Origin: Podarcis filfolensis
Taxonomy: Eukaryota
Assembly (NCBI GenBank): GCA_964270895.1
Contig: OZ185441.1
DNA: 64,000 bases
Reading direction: 5' to 3' (one strand)
How positions within the stretch are numbered: position 1 is the stretch's first letter; each line of letters opens with the position of its first letter. This document shows positions 14,018 through 24,200 of the stretch, piece after piece. The notes under the pieces were generated by a model, which saw only the letters and a program-made list of their open reading frames with translations, had not been told where the DNA came from and searched no databases. The translations under genes and the position numbers were made by a program.

Positions 14018-14059
<42 letters not shown>
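14018..14059. repeat. (AC)21 microsatellite
   Basis: Direct reading of the sequence. Confidence 0.97.
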
Positions 14060-14062
<3 letters not shown>

Positions 14063-14922
14063 TAGGTCTGAGTAGAAATATAGCTGGAAATATAGCTGGA
14101 AATACAATACAGGTGTGGTGATAAGGATGTACTTAACTGTTTTGTGAATGTGCATGATTAATACTTTCTGCATTTTATTTCCCTTGCTGACCTCACTTTT
14201 TACACCCCCATCCCCCCAAAAATTCCCATATGTATTCTGTAACTCAGTATAACACTCCATACACATGATAGAAGCTGATTCAATATTAAATTTGTTAATC
14301 TGTAAGGCATTATAAGAGTCTCTGGACATCTTCCACCTGTTGCTATTTACAGGTGTGATTCAAGTGCATACCTGCAAATTCAGGTGGTGCTTTTTGTGAT
14401 TTGGAGAGTGATGGGGAAATACCTTGGAAAGTGAGGTGTGTAACCCTTCGCACAAACGTGCAAACAAATCAATAGGAATGCTCAGTAAATGGGTTTGGAA
14501 GCAACTTCTGTTGTTTTTGCTGCAGAAGGCTAACACCTCTTGAAATGCTATCTTGTATTGATTTTTGTTAGCTGCCTTGGGAGGGTTTACCCTAATAGGC
14601 AGAATATAAATGCATGAAATGACATCATTCTACAGCTACCCTTGGGGGTGCAAGTAGTTAGCAGTGTGATCTGGGCAAAGAGGGAGGTGCGGGTTGCAGC
14701 CTAACATGGCTTCCCCTCCAAAAATTCCAATAAGAGGTCTACACATGCTAAACTTCCTCATTACTGTCCACTAGAGGCCCTGAAAAATCACTGAGGGTGA
14801 TGCCTTCCATGTGGGTTATGGGTAGAAAGTAGTTGTGTAGATTGTAGAAAACACCAGTTTTTTTCATCCAGTTTCCTTTCCTTACAGTTGTGAAATTGCA
14901 GTATTGTCTTCAAGTGGCAACA

Positions 14923-15070
14923 ATGCATACCACAAAGCCCAGGATGGTGGTTCCTTATGGCCTCAAGACTCTACTTGAGGGAGTGAGCAGAGCAGTTCTG
15001 AAAGCCAGTCCTTCTAACATTACTGAATTTGCTGCTGTGTATTTCAGGGAACTGATACTTTTCCGAGAAG
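14923..15070 (+). CDS. CABYR: CABYR first coding exon, RIIa-type dimerization/docking domain (MHTTKPRMVVPYGLKTLLEGVSRAVLKASPSNITEFAAVYFRELILFRE+G); the exon starts at 14888
   Basis: ATG at 14923 in context gcaacaATG. Acceptor tttccttacag ends at 14887 and donor G|gtttgc follows 15070. VPYGLKTLLEG.SRAVL is the CABYR/SPA17-type D/D domain. Confidence 0.95.
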
Positions 15071-15245
15071 GTTTGCTTTTCTTCTTTTTAAGTTAAATAC
15101 TAGTTTATAGAGCAATTCAGTGACATTATGGACTAACAGTACTGCCGCAGTACTGTAAATTGTCAGCAAACCACCCCCTTAAGCCTTTGTAAAATCTGAT
15201 ATCCTGAATTAAAATTAACTGGCTTTTCCCGCCTTTTTTCCCCAG

Positions 15246-15299
15246 ACCACCCTAATTTAGACATTAAAGACCTGGTGAGAGAGTTTCATATGACTAGAG
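15246..15299 (+). CDS. CABYR: CABYR coding exon ((D)HPNLDIKDLVREFHMTR+G)
   Basis: tttttcccag acceptor and G|gtaaga donor. Length is 54 nt, phase 1-1. It matches recalled human MDIKDLVKQFHQIK. Confidence 0.93.
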
Positions 15300-16071
15300 G
15301 TAAGACATTAGCAGCAAAGCAATAGTTCTTGGGGCAAGAACTAGCACAGGCAGATGCATGCCATACATTTAAAGCACAGGCAACACACAGTTAAAGGACA
15401 TGACTTCCCCCAAAGCATCCTGGGAGTGGTAGTTTGTTAAGGGTCCTGGGAATTGTAGGTGGGGGGACTACAGTTCCTGAAATTCTTTGGGGAAAGCAGT
15501 CTGCTTTAAGTGTGCATTGAATGCACTTTATGGTGTGGATCATTCCTGCCTTCCCTCCCTCTTTTTAAAAGAAATACAGTGCAGCCACTGAGGGTGCTAT
15601 TTGAAGTGGGAACTTGGCATGGGGGGAAAGGGGCTCTCCTCCTCATCCCATTTTCCAACAGAAACTCGCCCCATACAAGAAAATGCAGCTTGGGAACGGT
15701 GCTTTTCACCCTGGAAAATCAAATATCACCAGGAAAATTAAATAAGAAACCCTCCTTTCTTAAGTGTTACTGAATTAAATGCGAAAAGTGCCAAATCAAG
15801 CAAAACATTGATTGTTAACCTTTTAATTGCAGTAAAGATTGTCCTTCCTTGTATTGGGGGGAAATCAGCAATCTTGTGTTTTAGCACATGTGTTTTTAAA
15901 TCACTAGGAATTGTATGTATGAATAAACTTTAGATGGTATATAGAATATATTGACGCACTATGCAAACTGTATTTCTTTCTAAATGATAGCCTGCAGTTT
16001 TTGTATTGGAATCATCATTTTGGGTTAAAAAGACTTGATATCTCTGTTTAGAGAATATTGAACCGTATCAT

Positions 16072-16106
<35 letters not shown>
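16072..16106. repeat. (TAG)n microsatellite, about 11.7 units
   Basis: Direct reading of the sequence. Confidence 0.95.
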
Positions 16107-17887
16107 ACAGTTGTTATCAATTGTAGCAATAGAAACCCCTTTTCTGCCACATCAGTCTTCCACTTATAGCCTGAGTCCTGGAATCTCATGCCTTTTAAAA
16201 TATGCTACACAGCAGAGCCGTTGCTATGGGGGTGGAGGAGACCTAGCCAGACTTTTTGCCCCGGGTGAAGCCTTCAGAGGGGCGCCATTGATGCTTCCAG
16301 CCTCTCTGTGTGTACACAAATGCACATGGTGGGGTGTGTGTGTGTGCCAAACTGGGTCTTTGACCTGGGTGAAATAAAGCCTCGTTTCGCCCCTGTAAAC
16401 AGGATCACAGAACTACTGCAATGTGTTATTCTGTCTCCCTCAAAAAGGGATTATAACTGAGGCAGCTAAATTGGATTTGGAGAGATCCCCTCTTAAATGG
16501 CAATTTGAAGATACACTGTTTGAGTCAGCAGTCAGGGGCAGTGGAACTTGTGGCCTTCCAGAGGTTGTTTTGATACAACCCCCACCAGCCTCAGACAGCA
16601 TGGCCGACAGTCAAGGATGGTGGGAGTTCTAGCCCAGCAACATTGGAAGGCCCCACAGCTTCCTCATCCCTGGTAGAAAGTTGACTTGTATTTTTGTGGA
16701 AAATATGCTGCAGGTTGGGGAAGTTTATTCATGCAGTCACAAAATACCCTGTCCCCAAATATGTCCCTGATCTATGTTGTAAGGCAGAGGTGGCCGGAAG
16801 GTAGATCTCTTGAGTGATTCACAGCAAATCCATGAGGATTCTGATGCCCAGTTGTTTAACAATAGCAACAACAAAAAGGTCTCCCCTGCTTTCTAAATTA
16901 GGCTGCTGAGTGGATGCGAGAGGAAAACAATGAGTGAATAGTGCACATGCAACTTATCAAATGGACATGTGGCCACAGGGGGGCAGCCTCCTCATAGTGG
17001 CTATTTAGGGCTATTCAGCCTTGAGATCAGATCAGGCCCATGACCACTATTTGGTAATAGTCCAGAAGCAGATGAATTGTTTGAAGTAGAAAGGATCCAC
17101 TTACGATTTGTAGGAACCTGGGGTTTATAGAAAGTGGTGCTCAGCAGACACCTTCCATAAAGAACACAGCTGCCTAATACTGAATCAGGCCAGTATCTAC
17201 CTCAGTATTGTTGATACTTGACTAGTAGCAACTTCCCAGGGTTTTGAATAGAGATCTTTCCCAGTCCTGCCTGACAGCAGTGGGGGGCAAACAGCGGACC
17301 TTGTATATGTATTTGTTCATTAAAAAAAACCACTTGCATATGAAAATTAAATAAAAAATAGCAAAGTGGTTTGTAACAGTTACATCTGTACAATTGAAAC
17401 CACATTAAAAATATAAAAATCACAGATCATGAGCTAACTATTACAGGAAGAGGTTTTAAAAAATGCTTTCTCTGTCACTGAGCTGTAACCCCTCTCCAAA
17501 GGAAATAAGTGGTTTCATGGAAAGGGATTAATGTTGTCTAGGTCATTATGACATTTCCTGTTCAGCATTTAAAGTATAAAGCGAAAGTATTTTAAAAAGC
17601 CAGACTTTGGGGAATTGCAGAAAACTGGCTCCTATTTTGCAGCCTTGAAATGACAAGTGGACACTATTTGACAGTTGAATGTATGGAACCACCTCAACGT
17701 TTCACAAGCTCCATGTTAGCTGTTCATTGAGTCTCCCAGCAATTAATAAATAAGTGTTAAGCTTTTCAAACTGGACTTGGAAGTTGGTGGTTTTAAGCAA
17801 CTGCAAGTTGGTGGCTTAGAGAGAAAGAGAGAGAGAAAGCGCTTTGAGGAGAAAGCTGTTTAACCTTGTTTCCTGTTCACCCTGCAG

Positions 17888-19087
17888 TGGAAGGATGGGC
17901 AGAAGGGACAGCAGGAGCGGCGCAGGTGCCCCGCAAAAGGGCTGACGTGGGAGATGCATATAGGCCAGAGGTGGACACGACGGCTCCGATGAGTGACGAA
18001 CCGAAACGGAAGGAGAAATCGACTGACACAGAAGAGGACCAGATAAGTGAAGAACCACGCCGTGAACAGTGCACCAAGACAACCCAGTACCCATCGACCG
18101 TGGACGAGTTTGTAGACAGGGCTGGGGACGAAAAGGGAGCTGGGCTCGCCTACGTCCCGGCCGATCCAGCCCAGCTGGCATCGCAGATGCTAGGTAAAGT
18201 TGAACCTGTTTCTTCCGAAGCTGAACTGAAGGATGTGGCGGTCTCAGTGCAGACGCTCCCTACCTCATCCCAAAGTGTAGAGAATCTTGCTGCTTCAGTC
18301 ACAGAGGCCCCGCCACCCTCACCCGCACCGGAACCTGCCCCTGCCCCATCGGAAGTAGCGCCTGCCCCTGCAGAAGAGGAACCGCCTGCCCCTGCAGAAC
18401 CAGAACCTGCCCCCGCAGAACCGGAACCTGCCCCCGCGGAACCGGAACCTGCCCCTGCGGAACCAGAACCTGCCCCCGCAGAACCAGAGCCTGCCCCCGA
18501 GGAAGCAGAGCCTGCTGCGCCTGCAGAAGCAGAAGCAGAGCCTGCTGCCCCTGCAGAAGCAGAAGCAGAGCCTGCCGCCCCTGCAGCTTCTGTACACTCT
18601 CTCAGGGCTGGGTCCGCCACTCAAAGTCACACCTCTGCTCCTGGGGAGGTAGTTACCTCAGGCAGTCAGGCTGAGCAGCCACCTGCTGACGTAGCAGATC
18701 CAGATTCCTCAGACCCCTTGCTGGAAGAACAGCCGCCCCCGCCACCACCACCACCTCCTCCTCCTGATAAAGACCCATTGCAGGCTGAATCTTGTTCAAG
18801 TGAAATTGAGCTCACATCAGACATACAGCTCACCCCCATGTGTGATGATGATCCCAATGCTGGTGGAGAGCCCCAACCACCACCCTATGTAGAGCAGTTT
18901 CCGCAGCAGATAGTAATTCCTTTCGTAGACACTGTAGCATGTCTCTTTAATCCGCTGATGGCTTCGCAGAATGCAGGTCAGTTTGCTAGTATTCTAGATC
19001 CATCTGCAGATGATGCAGAATGTGACCCTGACAGGATGGATACTGCAGAGGAACTGAGTTCAGCTGATCCAGGTTTTATTATGTCAG
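17888..19087 (+). CDS. CABYR: CABYR large CR-A exon (acidic, Pro/Ala/Glu-rich). It has an internal alternative donor after 18193; if unspliced the frame ends at TAG 19132-19134
   Basis: Acceptor cctgcag ends at 17887; G+TG gives Val. Motifs EKSTDTEED, KTTQYPS, AYVPADPAQLASQMLG and YVEQFPQQIVIPFVDTVACL match recalled mammalian CABYR. Donor CAG|GTAAGA at 19088. Confidence 0.9.
18391..18579 (+). repeat. Coding minisatellite in CABYR: 5 x 21 nt (PAEPEPA), a linker, then 2 x 30 nt (PAEAEAEPAA)
   Basis: 21-nt units start at 18391, 18412, 18433, 18454 and 18475. 30-nt units start at 18520 and 18550. Confidence 0.92.
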
Positions 19088-20621
19088 GTAAGAAAGTCAA
19101 GATATTTCTGAAAGCTGCCTATTCCATGTTGTAGTGATATTATTGCTCCATAATCAACAGATGGCTCCATCTCCTCAAATGCACTTGTGCCCATAGCTCA
19201 GCTGAGACTGAGGTCTCACCCACACTGTACATTAAAAGCACATGGCTCCCCTGACAAAGCATACTGGGAACTGCAGTTTACCTCTCACAGAGCCCCCAGC
19301 ACCCTTAAACTACAATTCCCAGGACTTTGTTGGGGAAACCATGTGCTTTAAATGAATGGTGTGGTTGTGACCCCAAAGGCCTTGTGCTGGTACAGTGCCT
19401 TGGGGACTGGAGCTTTAATTATTTAAATGCAAGTATCTATGGCAGTGCCTTGATGAGATAAGTGATTGGTCACTTTTGCTTTTAGGGAGTTACAGAGCCC
19501 ACAGCACCTAACTGGAATGTGCATGTCTGGAATTTTTGCCTCTGTTTTCTTCCAGGTGCATGGTTGATTGTGAGTAGGCCCCAAAACGTACCTTGCATGA
19601 GTGCCAGCTGCCCCATTTTTCTGCTCAAGTCTTGTATCATTTCTTGCAAGCGGACTGGGCAGGAGCAGGATGACATTCAGCGGGGAGTTAGGCCAATGCC
19701 TTTTGGCCCTTCTTTAAACCATGATTAGCCCCTCTCACAATAGACTATGCATCTTGAATCAAAATTACACACATGCTCACAGTGGTTAACAGAAAGTGAT
19801 GTGGGTGACCGTGGCTTCAGGTTGTGTTTTTTAAAAAACGAACTAGTATTCAGATGCTCAGCCATGGCACTGCTTAGGTTTTTGCATTTAAAAGAAATGG
19901 TGGTGGTTGCCTGGGCTGTCCCTTTAGGTCTGGTCTTCTCCAGATTGTTAACAGAGAGGGGACTAATCGCTTCTTGCTGAGAACTGCAGAACTTGCTGCA
20001 GCTGGAGGATTGGCTTCCCATGGCGACAGTGTTTCCTCTCATTCTCTGCTCTCCCTCCGTGAGAAGTGTGTAGCCCACTCCTGTTCTCGAGCTGGAGAAG
20101 CTCTCCTAGCATCTTTCCCATGGCCTTGGTGTGCCCTGCGATGGCGCACTATTCCCTAGAGTCACTTCCCATTAGAGAGGTATAGGTAGGTAAGGTCTGG
20201 AAGCATCTTACAGAAGAGAGAATGCCGAAGGGGACAGGGGTTAGAGGAACACAAAGGGTTGGCATGGCTGGACAGGACTTGTGGTCGAGGAGACACTTTC
20301 AACCCATCATCTTTGGGTCACCCATACGAAAACAGTATCCTTACAACCAACAGAAGTACCTAATGACAAAAATTTCCCCCAAGTTGTGAATCTGATATTT
20401 TGGATTTATTTCGAAAATTATGAGAACCGGTTCTTCTGCTGTTCTCCATTTCAGCCATGCCAAGGTCCTCCCTTTTGCCTTCAGGGATTCTCTCCTCTCT
20501 GTAACATCCTTTCTTTGTGGCATAAAGTTGTGGGTAAGGCTATGCAATGTGACTGCAGTTCGTACATCCTACTAGATGGTCTTTCATGCCAGCAAATTTT
20601 CTTTAAATTTTTATTTTATAG

Positions 20622-21256
20622 CCATGGCAACAAGCGAACCAGGACAACCACCACCATATTCTAATGTGTGGACTCTCTATTGTCTAACTGATATGCATCA
20701 ACAAGGTCGCAAGTCACCACCACCTCCACCACCCCTTCCACCTGTTGGAACTGGTGCTCCTGTTCCCCAGGCAACCCTATTCATATCTAGTGGTAAGGAC
20801 CAGCCGCAGTATCTACAGCCGCAGATGCTACAACAAGGCCAACCACCACAAGTGTCCTCTCCAACTTATGTGATGATGGAAGATGGGAAGAAGGGAAATG
20901 CACCACCTTTCATTTTAGTGGGCTCTTCTGTTCAGAATAAACAGGACTGGAAACCCATCCCTGGCCATGCTGTCCTTGCACAGCAGGATACTGGCGGGAC
21001 TGTGAGGAGGTTCGCTACGATACCCGTACCAGTTGCCAGGGCAGCAGATCCGAAAATGGCCAATCCCAATTTTAACTCCGCACAGGATAGCGGCAGGCCT
21101 CCAACTCCAGTTTTTCTTTCAGTTGCCATACCACTGGAAGATGTGATGAATGGGAAGAAGGGCTCAGGAGCTGGGGATAAAGCACCCTTTGCAGGCAGCT
21201 ATGGTATAGCAGGAGAGATCACATTTACTACTGCCTCTGTGCGCAGGACAGAATAG
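20622..21256 (+). CDS. CABYR: CABYR CR-B exon ((A)MATSEPGQPPPYSNVWTLYCLTD...GSYGIAGEITFTTASVRRTE*)
   Basis: ttttattttatag acceptor, phase 1 (G+CC gives Ala). WTLYCLTD, APPFILVG, WKPIPGHAV, PVFLSVAIP and GSYGIAGE match recalled mammalian CR-B. TAG at 21254-21256; donor after 21263. Confidence 0.94.
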
Positions 21257-24200
21257 CAAAAGGGTAAGTAGATCAGTTCACTTCGTTTATTTTTTTAATG
21301 GTTGGTTGGTTGATTGTAGAGATGTATTCTGTAGTGGGCTACATTTCTAATATGCTGCAGCCATTCTGGGATCAGAAAGTTTTCTTCCAAGGTTGCAAAC
21401 TGCTGGGGGGGGGGTGTCCCTAACTCCACATTCCTTTTATGCATTTCCCTCTAGAGAAGAAGCTGTACCATTTTCATATTGGGAACAGTGAAAAATAAAT
21501 AGTAGACAAGTAGTTTATTTTTTAAGGGTTGTGAGCTGCTGAAAATGGGACACTAAAATAATGTTGGAATTCTCTGCACAGACCTCAATTGGCAATGACC
21601 ATAAGCTTTCAACTTGGAACTCAAATCCTACTGATTTCAAAGGAATGTATTCCCAGGTGATGGCTCTGATGCAAAAGTTTGTGCTTAGCTTCTGTTTTTT
21701 ATGAAACTTAAATTCTGTTCTTTGACTGTTTGGCAGAAAAGTTTGGAAATTGAATACCCTCCACCTTGCCCCACAGTTCATTGGTAGGACTTTTGTATTC
21801 AGAAAAGGACTTGATGCAGGTGTAAAGAAACCTTTGGCCCTCCAGATGTTGCTGAACTACAACTCCCACCAGCCTCAGCAAGCATGGCCAGGGACGATGG
21901 GACTTGTAGTGCATGCAGAGAGTGGCTTAGTGCGTAGAGAGGGTAATGGCACATGGAGCACTGTGTTGTGCACATCTGTTCCCTGCCCAGTTATGCGCAT
22001 GGGACCCTGTTTCCAAGGACATAGTGGTCTGAGCTGTATGAGGGTGCTGATGCCATTCACATCTTAATTAGTTTGGTGAGTGTGTCCCTTTTTCAGAGAT
22101 GCAGTGGCAAATCAAGTGTTGTTCATAGAACGTTTAAAAAATACTCAACAAATGACTGAAGGGATATTGCTGATTTCCTTTGGAATGTGCATTTGGCCAG
22201 TTTCTGAGAAATGGGTTTGAAGCTTGTGAGCCCCCTTGCTGAATCTGTTGTCATTTGCTTTCTTTTTCCTTCATGTGCATTGTTCATTATTGGAGACTAA
22301 ATTTGGGTTAGAAATTTGATGAAGGTCCACAGAATACTTGCTGCAAGTTTTCTACATTGCAGAATTAATGAAGAGCTATCTTTAAAATAGAGGGTGGCAT
22401 TCAACTAAGTTTTACTGAGAGCAGATCCCTTGAAATTAATGAACATCACTAAATTGGGCCCATTCATTTGAATAAGTCTGAGTAAAACTTAGTTGAACGC
22501 CACTCAGAGTTATTTTCCAGCTGCTATTGCATGTGAAAGATAAAAGTAGTTTTGTCCTGGTTTTTGTTGTTGTTGAACTTGAAAGTATGGAATAGGTTGC
22601 TGGTTTTCTAGAGATTTGCTGAGACATGCAGATCAGTTCCGTTCTTTTTAACAATCCATGAAATTCTGTCTTTGTTACTTCTGAAAATCTTACCCGGTTT
22701 GCCTTTGCTTTGATGCTTTAGAACTGCTGCTCTGTATTAAGGGTGACAACCAACAGTGTCAGCCTGCTTGTGGAACAGATGTCCAGTTCTGACACAGGCC
22801 TTACCCATCCACTCCCACCCCTACTCCTCACATGACGTTGGATGTTGTCTAGTCTATTGTTTAAAAGGACGCATGTCATAGTGTTGAGGGCCAATTACTC
22901 AGTGTATCAGGGTGTATGAGAATAGCCAAACAGGGAGGGGGAGATAGTAGACTTAAATAAATTCGGGGATGATCTGGGGTATGTCAAAGTGCTGGTGTTG
23001 TAAAATTGCAGTGATTAGGAAACAGTAGATCAGTTCCTACAAACATGGTGTAAATGGGTCAAATGCAACTTTGCTGGCAGCAGATGAAGCCAGCTTAAGC
23101 CACAAGGAGCTCAAGAGCTACTGCTGGCTTGGTGGTGTCATTCTAGCCTGGTGAGCCTCATAATGCAGATGCCTTGTTGTACTTAAAACAGTTCTGCAAT
23201 AGTTACAGTTCTCATCTTCATGAGCTGACAAAGCAGTTAAAGATAGCATAGCCTGCAAAGGGTGGGTGGGTGTAATTCGGTCCTATCGAGAAATTAAACC
23301 ATGAATAGATGTGACCTGCAAAGATGGGCATAAACATACTTTTTGGAGTAGTTTCCAATAACATAGGTCACAAACACACTAGACATTTAAAGCACATGAT
23401 CCCCCCCCAAAGAATCTGGAGAAATGTAGACTTACAATTCCCAACACCCTTAACAAACTACAGTTCCCAAAGTTCTCTTGGGGAAGCCATGTGGTTTAAA
23501 TCTGCCTTACATGTACTTTCCATATATAGCGTGGATGTGATGAGAGCTGACAGTTGCATGAGTACAAGGCAGAAAGGCAGGTCACATTAAAAAATATAGC
23601 AGGTAAAATATTTGTAAAAGTGTGCAGTGGTGGCAGTTTTCTGCTAAGGAGAATTTTACATTTGGAAGGGTGAGGCTAGACCACATGACTTGCAGGCAGA
23701 ATGTCCACAGTTCATTCCCTGACATCTCCAGCTTGGGTTGTCTAAGAAATCCTGGCATGCTCCTGACAGTGCAGACCAGGTTGGCAGGGGGCATGCAGAG
23801 AAGGTAGGTTGGGCTCTACTGGTAGAGCTGCAGTTGTTTGACAATGGGAACAACAAAATTTATCTCCCTGATGAAATTAGGAAAAGCCGAGGGGAGGAGG
23901 GGGACAGGGTCTCTAGGAGTGGATTTTTGTATAGGGCAGCAATTCCATGCCTGAGCTAGGAATTTCGTAATTCAATACCTATTTTCTCACGTTATTCACA
24001 TACAGATGTATGTCATGTGCAGGCAGGTCTAAAAGCATGGTTCTGTTCTGCAGCCATCACAATTATATCCCACCTATAAGTAACACGTGAACAGGGTTAA
24101 GGCATCTATTAAAACACCATGTAGCTCCTACAGACTTGATGCATTCCCACCTTCGGTGTAGACAGTATCAGTTTAGCTGCACCAAAATTTTACATAAACA

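Follow-up and report, generated by a model that had tools for sequence, protein, structure and literature searches.

Is the stop codon that separates the pair of coding regions termed CR-A and CR-B in the full-length mRNA of human and mouse CABYR an original feature of this gene or a derived one? The question is raised by a locus of the lizard Podarcis filfolensis (assembly GCA_964270895.1, contig OZ185441.1), of which a stretch of 64,000 nucleotides (nt), hereafter the window, was analyzed and in which no stop lies between the two regions. Our analysis makes it very probable that the locus holds the lizard orthologue of CABYR (calcium-binding tyrosine phosphorylation-regulated protein, the full name in the source annotations of its CR-A matches), that a single frame is ancestral in tetrapods, and that the mammalian splits are derived, having arisen through at least two non-homologous lesions. 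Calcium binding, tyrosine phosphorylation during capacitation and a location in the fibrous sheath are known for CABYR from work on human and mouse (PMC3398308), and comparable properties may be expected of the lizard protein.

The exon model was rebuilt by script from the letters of the window, positions 14700-21400 being inspected, and includes the following features (a caret marks a splice point):

14923-15070, plus strand: first coding exon, its coding part beginning at the ATG, with the RIIa dimerisation/docking domain; 148 nt, ending in phase 1 at the donor AAG^gtttgc
15246-15299, plus strand: cassette exon of 54 nt (18 amino acids, aa), phase 1 on both sides, so that skipping it keeps the frame
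17888-19087, plus strand: large CR-A exon of 1200 nt with the phase 1 consensus donor CAG^gtaaga; its homologues are named CABYR
19069-19071, plus strand: CCA (Pro), homologous by DNA alignment and frame translations to the TAA that ends CR-A in anthropoid primates
19072-19087, plus strand: five codons GGT TTT ATT ATG TCA together with the opening base of the split Ala codon, placed by DNA alignment
19088-20621, plus strand: CR-A/CR-B intron of 1534 nt, its last ~75 nt alignable with mammals
20622-21256, plus strand: CR-B exon of 635 nt (211 codons, the split one counted), with the acceptor ttatag^CC ATG and the stop TAG at 21254-21256

Together the four coding exons on the plus strand (148 + 54 + 1200 + 635 = 2037 nt) give an open reading frame of 678 aa whose translation holds zero internal stops before the terminal TAG at 21254-21256. 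All exon junctions are in phase 1, with GT donors (AAG^gtttgc, GAG^gtaaga and CAG^gtaaga) and AG acceptors (..ccccag^, ..ctgcag^ and ..ttatag^) that follow pyrimidine-rich tracts. The letters across the CR-A/CR-B splice are GCT GAT CCA GGT TTT ATT ATG TCA G^CC ATG GCA ACA, and the peptide over this junction is ...SADPGFIMS^AMATSEPGQPPPY. Default splicing from 19087/19088 to 20621/20622 would yield one protein of 678 aa, composed of the RIIa domain, an acidic, proline-rich CR-A and a conserved CR-B, while read-through into the intron after 19087 runs to an in-frame TAG at 19132-19134. The original prediction for this locus had named the gene CABYR and given a 2037-nt frame of 678 aa, the junction letters and a phase-1 donor and acceptor; the script returned each of these numbers, and the RIIa domain and the CABYR-named matches agree with the name.

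Several lines of comparison bear on the identity of the gene. The N-terminal RIIa domain matches Pfam PF02197 with an E value of 2.7e-10 (score 40.2 bits, cut-off 22.4), and the Pfam search of the CR-A and CR-B pieces returned nothing meaningful besides it; a weak VIR_N match in these pieces (E 0.19) was dismissed. The top 33 matches of the CR-A exon all come from squamates, turtles and crocodilians, 29 of them being named CABYR by their sources, and the best match is isoform X2 of Zootoca vivipara CABYR (98% identity). The CR-B exon is 80% identical to its alligator counterpart and 63-68% identical to mammalian CR-B; a phmmer search with it, run with no length filter, matched alligator (3.4e-90), a marsupial (1.7e-58) and a bat (6.3e-54) as well as birds and amphibians, and the conserved CR-B region is present from …GQPPPYSNxWTLYCLTD… to …GSYGIAGEITxT…. 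The structure of a CABYR gene is likewise present, with the 54-nt cassette, an internal donor inside the large CR-A exon and CR-B on an exon of its own, and the donor and acceptor positions equal those in seven mammals. By homology and structure, positions 14923-21256 on the plus strand are the lizard CABYR orthologue, closest to that of Zootoca vivipara. To our knowledge, no CR-A or CR-B region exists in ROPN1, SP17 or ASP. The feature that these sperm proteins, ROPN1 (ropporin), SP17 and ASP, share with CABYR is the N-terminal RIIa domain for dimerisation and AKAP docking (PMC3398308).

Since a match in phase alone would be expected with a chance of one in three, the CR-A/CR-B junction was judged real on the identical peptide in sauropsid predictions; it occurs in predicted proteins of Rhineura, Pogona, Liasis, Heteronotia, Ophiophagus, four turtles and alligator. 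Full-length predicted CABYR of reptiles (Pogona vitticeps X1, 684 aa; Rhineura floridana, 632; Liasis olivaceus, 657; Natator depressus, 655; Alligator mississippiensis, 632) has the same exon logic, junction (...(D/E)(P/Q)GFIMS^AMAT(S/T)E..GQPPPYSNVWTLY), RIIa start, PAPE repeats and CR-B end as the gene in the window, and differs from it only by repeat copy number and point differences. Beyond reptiles, a hummingbird model runs on through a diverged form of the junction, the models of Pogoniulus and Melanerpes, of the woodpecker group, are single long open reading frames, and so are the CABYR models of caecilian, salamander and frog, which have an RIIa start and a CR-B-like end.

The same frame is also widespread in mammals, whose isoforms were gathered by searches seeded with an opossum isoform and with a squirrel-monkey protein. 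Many mammalian fused isoforms of 633-735 aa read ...EAAPEQGLMEP^AIAASEAGQPPPYSNMWTL (...PEQGLMEP^AIAASE), and the species that have them include armadillo, sloth, manatee, tenrec, rhino, camel, whales, cats, dog, seals, mustelids, hyena, moles and several bat families. A pattern count over predicted protein clusters finds the fused junction in 62 clusters, 10 of them sauropsid and 52 mammalian, and the latter span at least eight orders, including Xenarthra and Afrotheria. Genomic DNA of Myotis is continuous as well (CCA GGT TTG ATG GAG CCA G^gtaagaaa ... ttatag^CA ATA GCA). A stop at the codon equivalent to 19069-19071 was not found in any non-mammal compared. This distribution supports a single CR-A/CR-B frame as the ancestral tetrapod condition, kept in most mammals, and since Xenarthra, Afrotheria and most Laurasiatheria retain it, the placental ancestor almost certainly had it too. 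The fused frame of CABYR is already visible in the public gene predictions of many reptiles, birds, amphibians and mammals.

How, then, were CR-A and CR-B separated in those mammals that have a stop between them? The DNA of the CR-A exon end and of the CR-B acceptor was compared in eight species (lizard, Myotis, Theropithecus, Grammomys, Cricetulus, Lepus, Otolemur and Bubalus); the human-type stop is accordingly documented from Old World monkey DNA together with the ends of ape and monkey proteins, not from human sequence. Lizard and mammals align gap-free over the final 19 nt of the CR-A exon and the opening 8 nt of the intron, and lizard 19072-19087 is homologous to mammalian GGT TTG ATG GAG/AAG CCA G. 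Anthropoid-primate CABYR, examined at the Theropithecus gelada locus, has the lizard's donor and acceptor, the same stretch of five codons ahead of the split Ala codon, and the internal-donor isoform described below. However, the Theropithecus exon ends GAA TAA GGT TTG ATG AAG CCA G^, that is, an in-frame TAA, five codons and the split Ala codon, with ATG following, and this TAA, which stands in the column of lizard CCA 19069-19071 with both flanks in the ancestral frame, limits the product of the full-length mRNA to CR-A. In nine CR-A-only proteins of anthropoids (apes and monkeys of the Old and New Worlds) the last residues are ...TAE, as expected from a stop at the TAA codon, and anthropoid primates are the only group in which TAA was seen at this position.

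A different change is found in Grammomys, Cricetulus, Lepus, Otolemur and Bubalus, which are one base short (modulo 3) between CCTG and AGGTTTGATG. In these species CR-A reads (Q/E) V TGA (TGA), with the donor in phase 0 for that frame and CR-B in a different one. The corresponding end ...[QKE]V is found in 29 protein clusters, which represent rodents, lagomorphs, lemurs and loris, deer and bovids, and hedgehog. At the nucleotide level mouse and other Glires CABYR (the mouse CR-A having 453 aa; PMC3398308) has the same exon end, donor and acceptor as the lizard gene, and is unlike it in having one base less 5' of AGGTTTGATG, the TGA TGA, the phase 0 donor and the displaced CR-B frame. The out-of-frame TGA TGA of Glires overlaps the positions of lizard 19076-19081. 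In mouse TGA TGA lies between CR-A (nt 73-1431) and CR-B (nt 1443/1449-2039) (PMC3398308), and these coordinates place the two regions in different frames, (1443-73) mod 3 being 2, which fits the frameshift in the rodent DNA.

By alignment, the human-type and mouse-type stops are therefore non-homologous, the first being a substituted codon and the second a pair of TGAs exposed by the loss of one nucleotide. The first lesion would be the in-frame TAA gained in anthropoid primates at the codon homologous to 19069-19071, and the second the loss of one nucleotide just 5' of AGGTTTGATG in Glires and strepsirrhines, ruminants and hedgehog, by which CR-A would run into TGA(TGA). Upstream CR-A, CR-B and the internal-donor isoform remain intact across the split lineages. 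In these lineages CR-B would be reached solely through that older isoform, which probably kept CR-B in use. Whether the split is a derived state reached repeatedly by different lesions within the last ~15 codons of CR-A is, in our estimate, an evenly balanced matter. Among predicted proteins, that of elephant ends in ...EAAPE, that of horse in ...DIEPE and those of pigs in ...EAAPGQ, with peccary in the same early-ending set, and colugo, Psammomys and the Logan-derived protein P0250 end in ...ST or ...CT. All of these ends, seen in predicted proteins only, lie at varied positions a few codons short of the usual exon end, and they hint that this stretch of about 15 codons has been hit by more stops or frameshifts of independent origin.

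Glires and strepsirrhines share xAG GTT TGA TGA AGC CAG^ and an AAG (Lys) codon state, and this could also reflect a single loss of one nucleotide in the ancestor of Euarchontoglires, after which anthropoids regained the base and gained TAA, so that one lesion would have passed through both stops in succession. The number of events is three under either history. However, the form that is one nucleotide short also occurs in ruminants and hedgehog, within the otherwise intact Laurasiatheria, and from this separate presence it follows that the loss can recur; moreover, there is no obvious driver for regaining a base exactly there, behind an existing stop. We regard this history as unlikely, and prefer non-homologous lesions of an ancestral continuous frame.

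The lizard gene could also produce a set of nested in-frame isoforms, each type of which is predicted in relatives. Two alternative splice sites lie within its exons:

18185-18201, plus strand: internal alternative donor CTA G^gtaaag in phase 1, with the splice point behind 18193
21103-21134, plus strand: internal alternative acceptor tttctttcag^TT GCC, exon from 21123, phase 1

Skipping the cassette (54 nt) leaves an open reading frame of 660 aa, and Zootoca X2 is without exactly these 18 residues. The internal donor at 18193/18194 joined to 20622 gives a protein of 380 aa of the mammalian form-III type; the corresponding ...AQML^AMATSE occurs in Pogona X3, Eublepharis, Hemicordylus and in bird and mammal proteins, and on this distribution the internal-donor isoform is older than the mammalian stops. 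Joining 19087 to the internal acceptor at 21122/21123 gives an in-frame isoform of 511 aa, and ...GFIMS^VAIPLED is present in proteins of Zootoca X2, Pogona X2, Varanus and Dermochelys. Since every alternative site is in phase 1, the splice options combine freely and all remain in frame. The Logan-derived sequences P0010 and P0021 were rejected as transcript evidence, being genomic open reading frames that run into the intron and not spliced cDNAs.

The ends of the CR-A/CR-B intron are of interest in themselves. Its start (19088-19101, GTAAGAAA.T.A) is nearly the same in lizard and mammals over the first 8-14 nt, and read-through tails consequently all open with GKK(V/I)(K/R), while the intron beyond is not conserved. 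Its last ~75 nt before CR-B (20540-20621) can be aligned across the lizard and seven mammals, as in GCC[T/A]GCAAATTTT and in an upstream block. The conservation of 20540-20621 exceeds what a polypyrimidine tract needs and looks like that of a region controlling splicing to an acceptor in alternative use. In many mammals another terminal exon follows CR-A in the spliced product, with tails such as DAENDAA.

It has to be considered whether the main product of the lizard gene is CR-A only, the intron being retained or the transcript ending there, so that a protein of 482 aa would run to TAG 19132-19134 and the 678-aa form would be minor or absent. The CR-A-only form of 80 kDa predominates in mouse sperm (PMC3398308), many mammals with no stop have CR-A-only models by read-through (...GLMEPGKKVRYLQN) or by another terminal exon, and the intron start GTAAGAAA is common to the lizard and most of the mammals compared. 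Against this, the donor matches the consensus almost perfectly, the junction peptide (GFIMSAMATSEPG) and the entire CR-B are strongly conserved in frame among sauropsids, the intron is unconserved past its first ~14 nt with read-through tails that differ among lizard, snake, turtle and alligator, and the fused model is X1 in Pogona, Heteronotia and Pelodiscus and is present also in Rhineura (X2), alligator (X2) and Liasis. A CR-A-only main product thus appears unlikely, and the lizard probably makes the fused protein.

The start of CR-B is informative about its nature. At the position of the CR-B start codon the lizard and Theropithecus have ATG, and Myotis, Otolemur, Lepus, Bubalus, Grammomys and Cricetulus have ATA or CTA (CTA in Grammomys); in most of the mammals examined CR-B thus lacks its own initiation codon there. 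The ATG at the mouse CR-B in the primer of PMC3398308 was discarded as evidence, since that primer was made to create an NcoI site. These codons agree with CR-B being the C-terminal domain of CABYR and not a second cistron, which in turn agrees with the detection of CR-B in mouse sperm solely alongside CR-A (PMC3398308).

The original prediction had instead derived the two-coding-region layout of mammals as a group from one nonsense change in the homologue of codon 19069-19071, the uninterrupted frame being sauropsid or ancestral, and although the Theropithecus TAA stands exactly there with its flanks in the ancestral frame, the nine anthropoid proteins end at it and no non-mammal has it, this is highly improbable, because the 52 mammalian clusters, drawn from eight orders or more, read through, in agreement with the Myotis DNA, and because the DNA of Glires, strepsirrhines and ruminants has a one-nucleotide length change and a shifted frame, in the mouse type into TGA TGA. 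The stop that it set about five codons before CR-B is correctly placed for anthropoids, yet it is not a mammalian trait: among the species compared a stop at this codon was seen in anthropoids only and in no non-mammal, and most mammals read through. That the uninterrupted frame is ancestral is borne out by squamates, turtles, a crocodilian, birds, amphibians and most mammalian orders, whereas its restriction to sauropsids fails on the 52 fused mammalian clusters.

Some observations weigh against a fused lizard protein and repeatedly split mammalian genes. Use of the donor at 19087/19088 is supported by its consensus and by predicted models of relatives, and among the CR-A matches no fused full-length lacertid protein occurs, the lacertid entry being only Zootoca X2. 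Most mammalian states were taken from predicted protein ends instead of DNA, the mammalian exon ends compared as DNA were placental, and one Saimiri model (UniRef) reads through at the codon where four other platyrrhines stop. Even so, non-homologous lesions in an ancestrally continuous gene very probably remain the best explanation.

The CR-A exon is biased in composition (P 18%, A 17%, E 13%) and contains a repetitive stretch:

18329-18586, plus strand: in-frame tandem repeats with 21-nt and 30-nt units encoding PAPAEPE / AEAEPAAPAE, detected by Tandem Repeats Finder

The copy number of these repeats varies relative to the Zootoca and Pogona proteins, and the stretch is therefore length-polymorphic between species. 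Simple repeats lie upstream of the gene, (CA/GT)n at 14030-14075, and in intron 2, an (AGT)n run at 16075-16110. Just past the stop there is a donor-like site (TAG CAAAAGG^gtaagtag, 21254-21275), which suggests an intron in the 3' untranslated region or an additional downstream exon. Further downstream, a minus-strand exon at ~43822 encodes the OSBP signature EQVSHHPP (LISEQVSHHPPISAFYAEGL) and would be one exon of a neighboring gene. In Dasypus (armadillo) the CABYR locus has a gene with Ank and Oxysterol_BP domains on the opposite strand, and the exon at ~43822 probably belongs to an OSBPL1A-like neighbor, arranged tail to tail with CABYR as at the armadillo locus.

The lizard locus itself is ordinary, a normal CABYR orthologue in the ancestral configuration. 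In the literature searched we found no evolutionary treatment of the CABYR stop, and distinct, lineage-restricted human-type and mouse-type lesions are likewise absent from it; they are of moderate interest as a comparative point. The comparison corrects a textbook-style view drawn from two model species, as the human-type and mouse-type stops differ in mutation and position and most mammals are without both. For the assembly of the sperm fibrous sheath, CR-B is best viewed as an ancestral C-terminal domain instead of a second cistron, and findings on CR-B translation in human and mouse may fail to generalise. Repeated splits, if true, would point to repeated selection for, or tolerance of, uncoupling the full-length protein from CR-B, and reptiles and most other mammals would then be the natural place to ask what role a full-length CR-A and CR-B protein plays.

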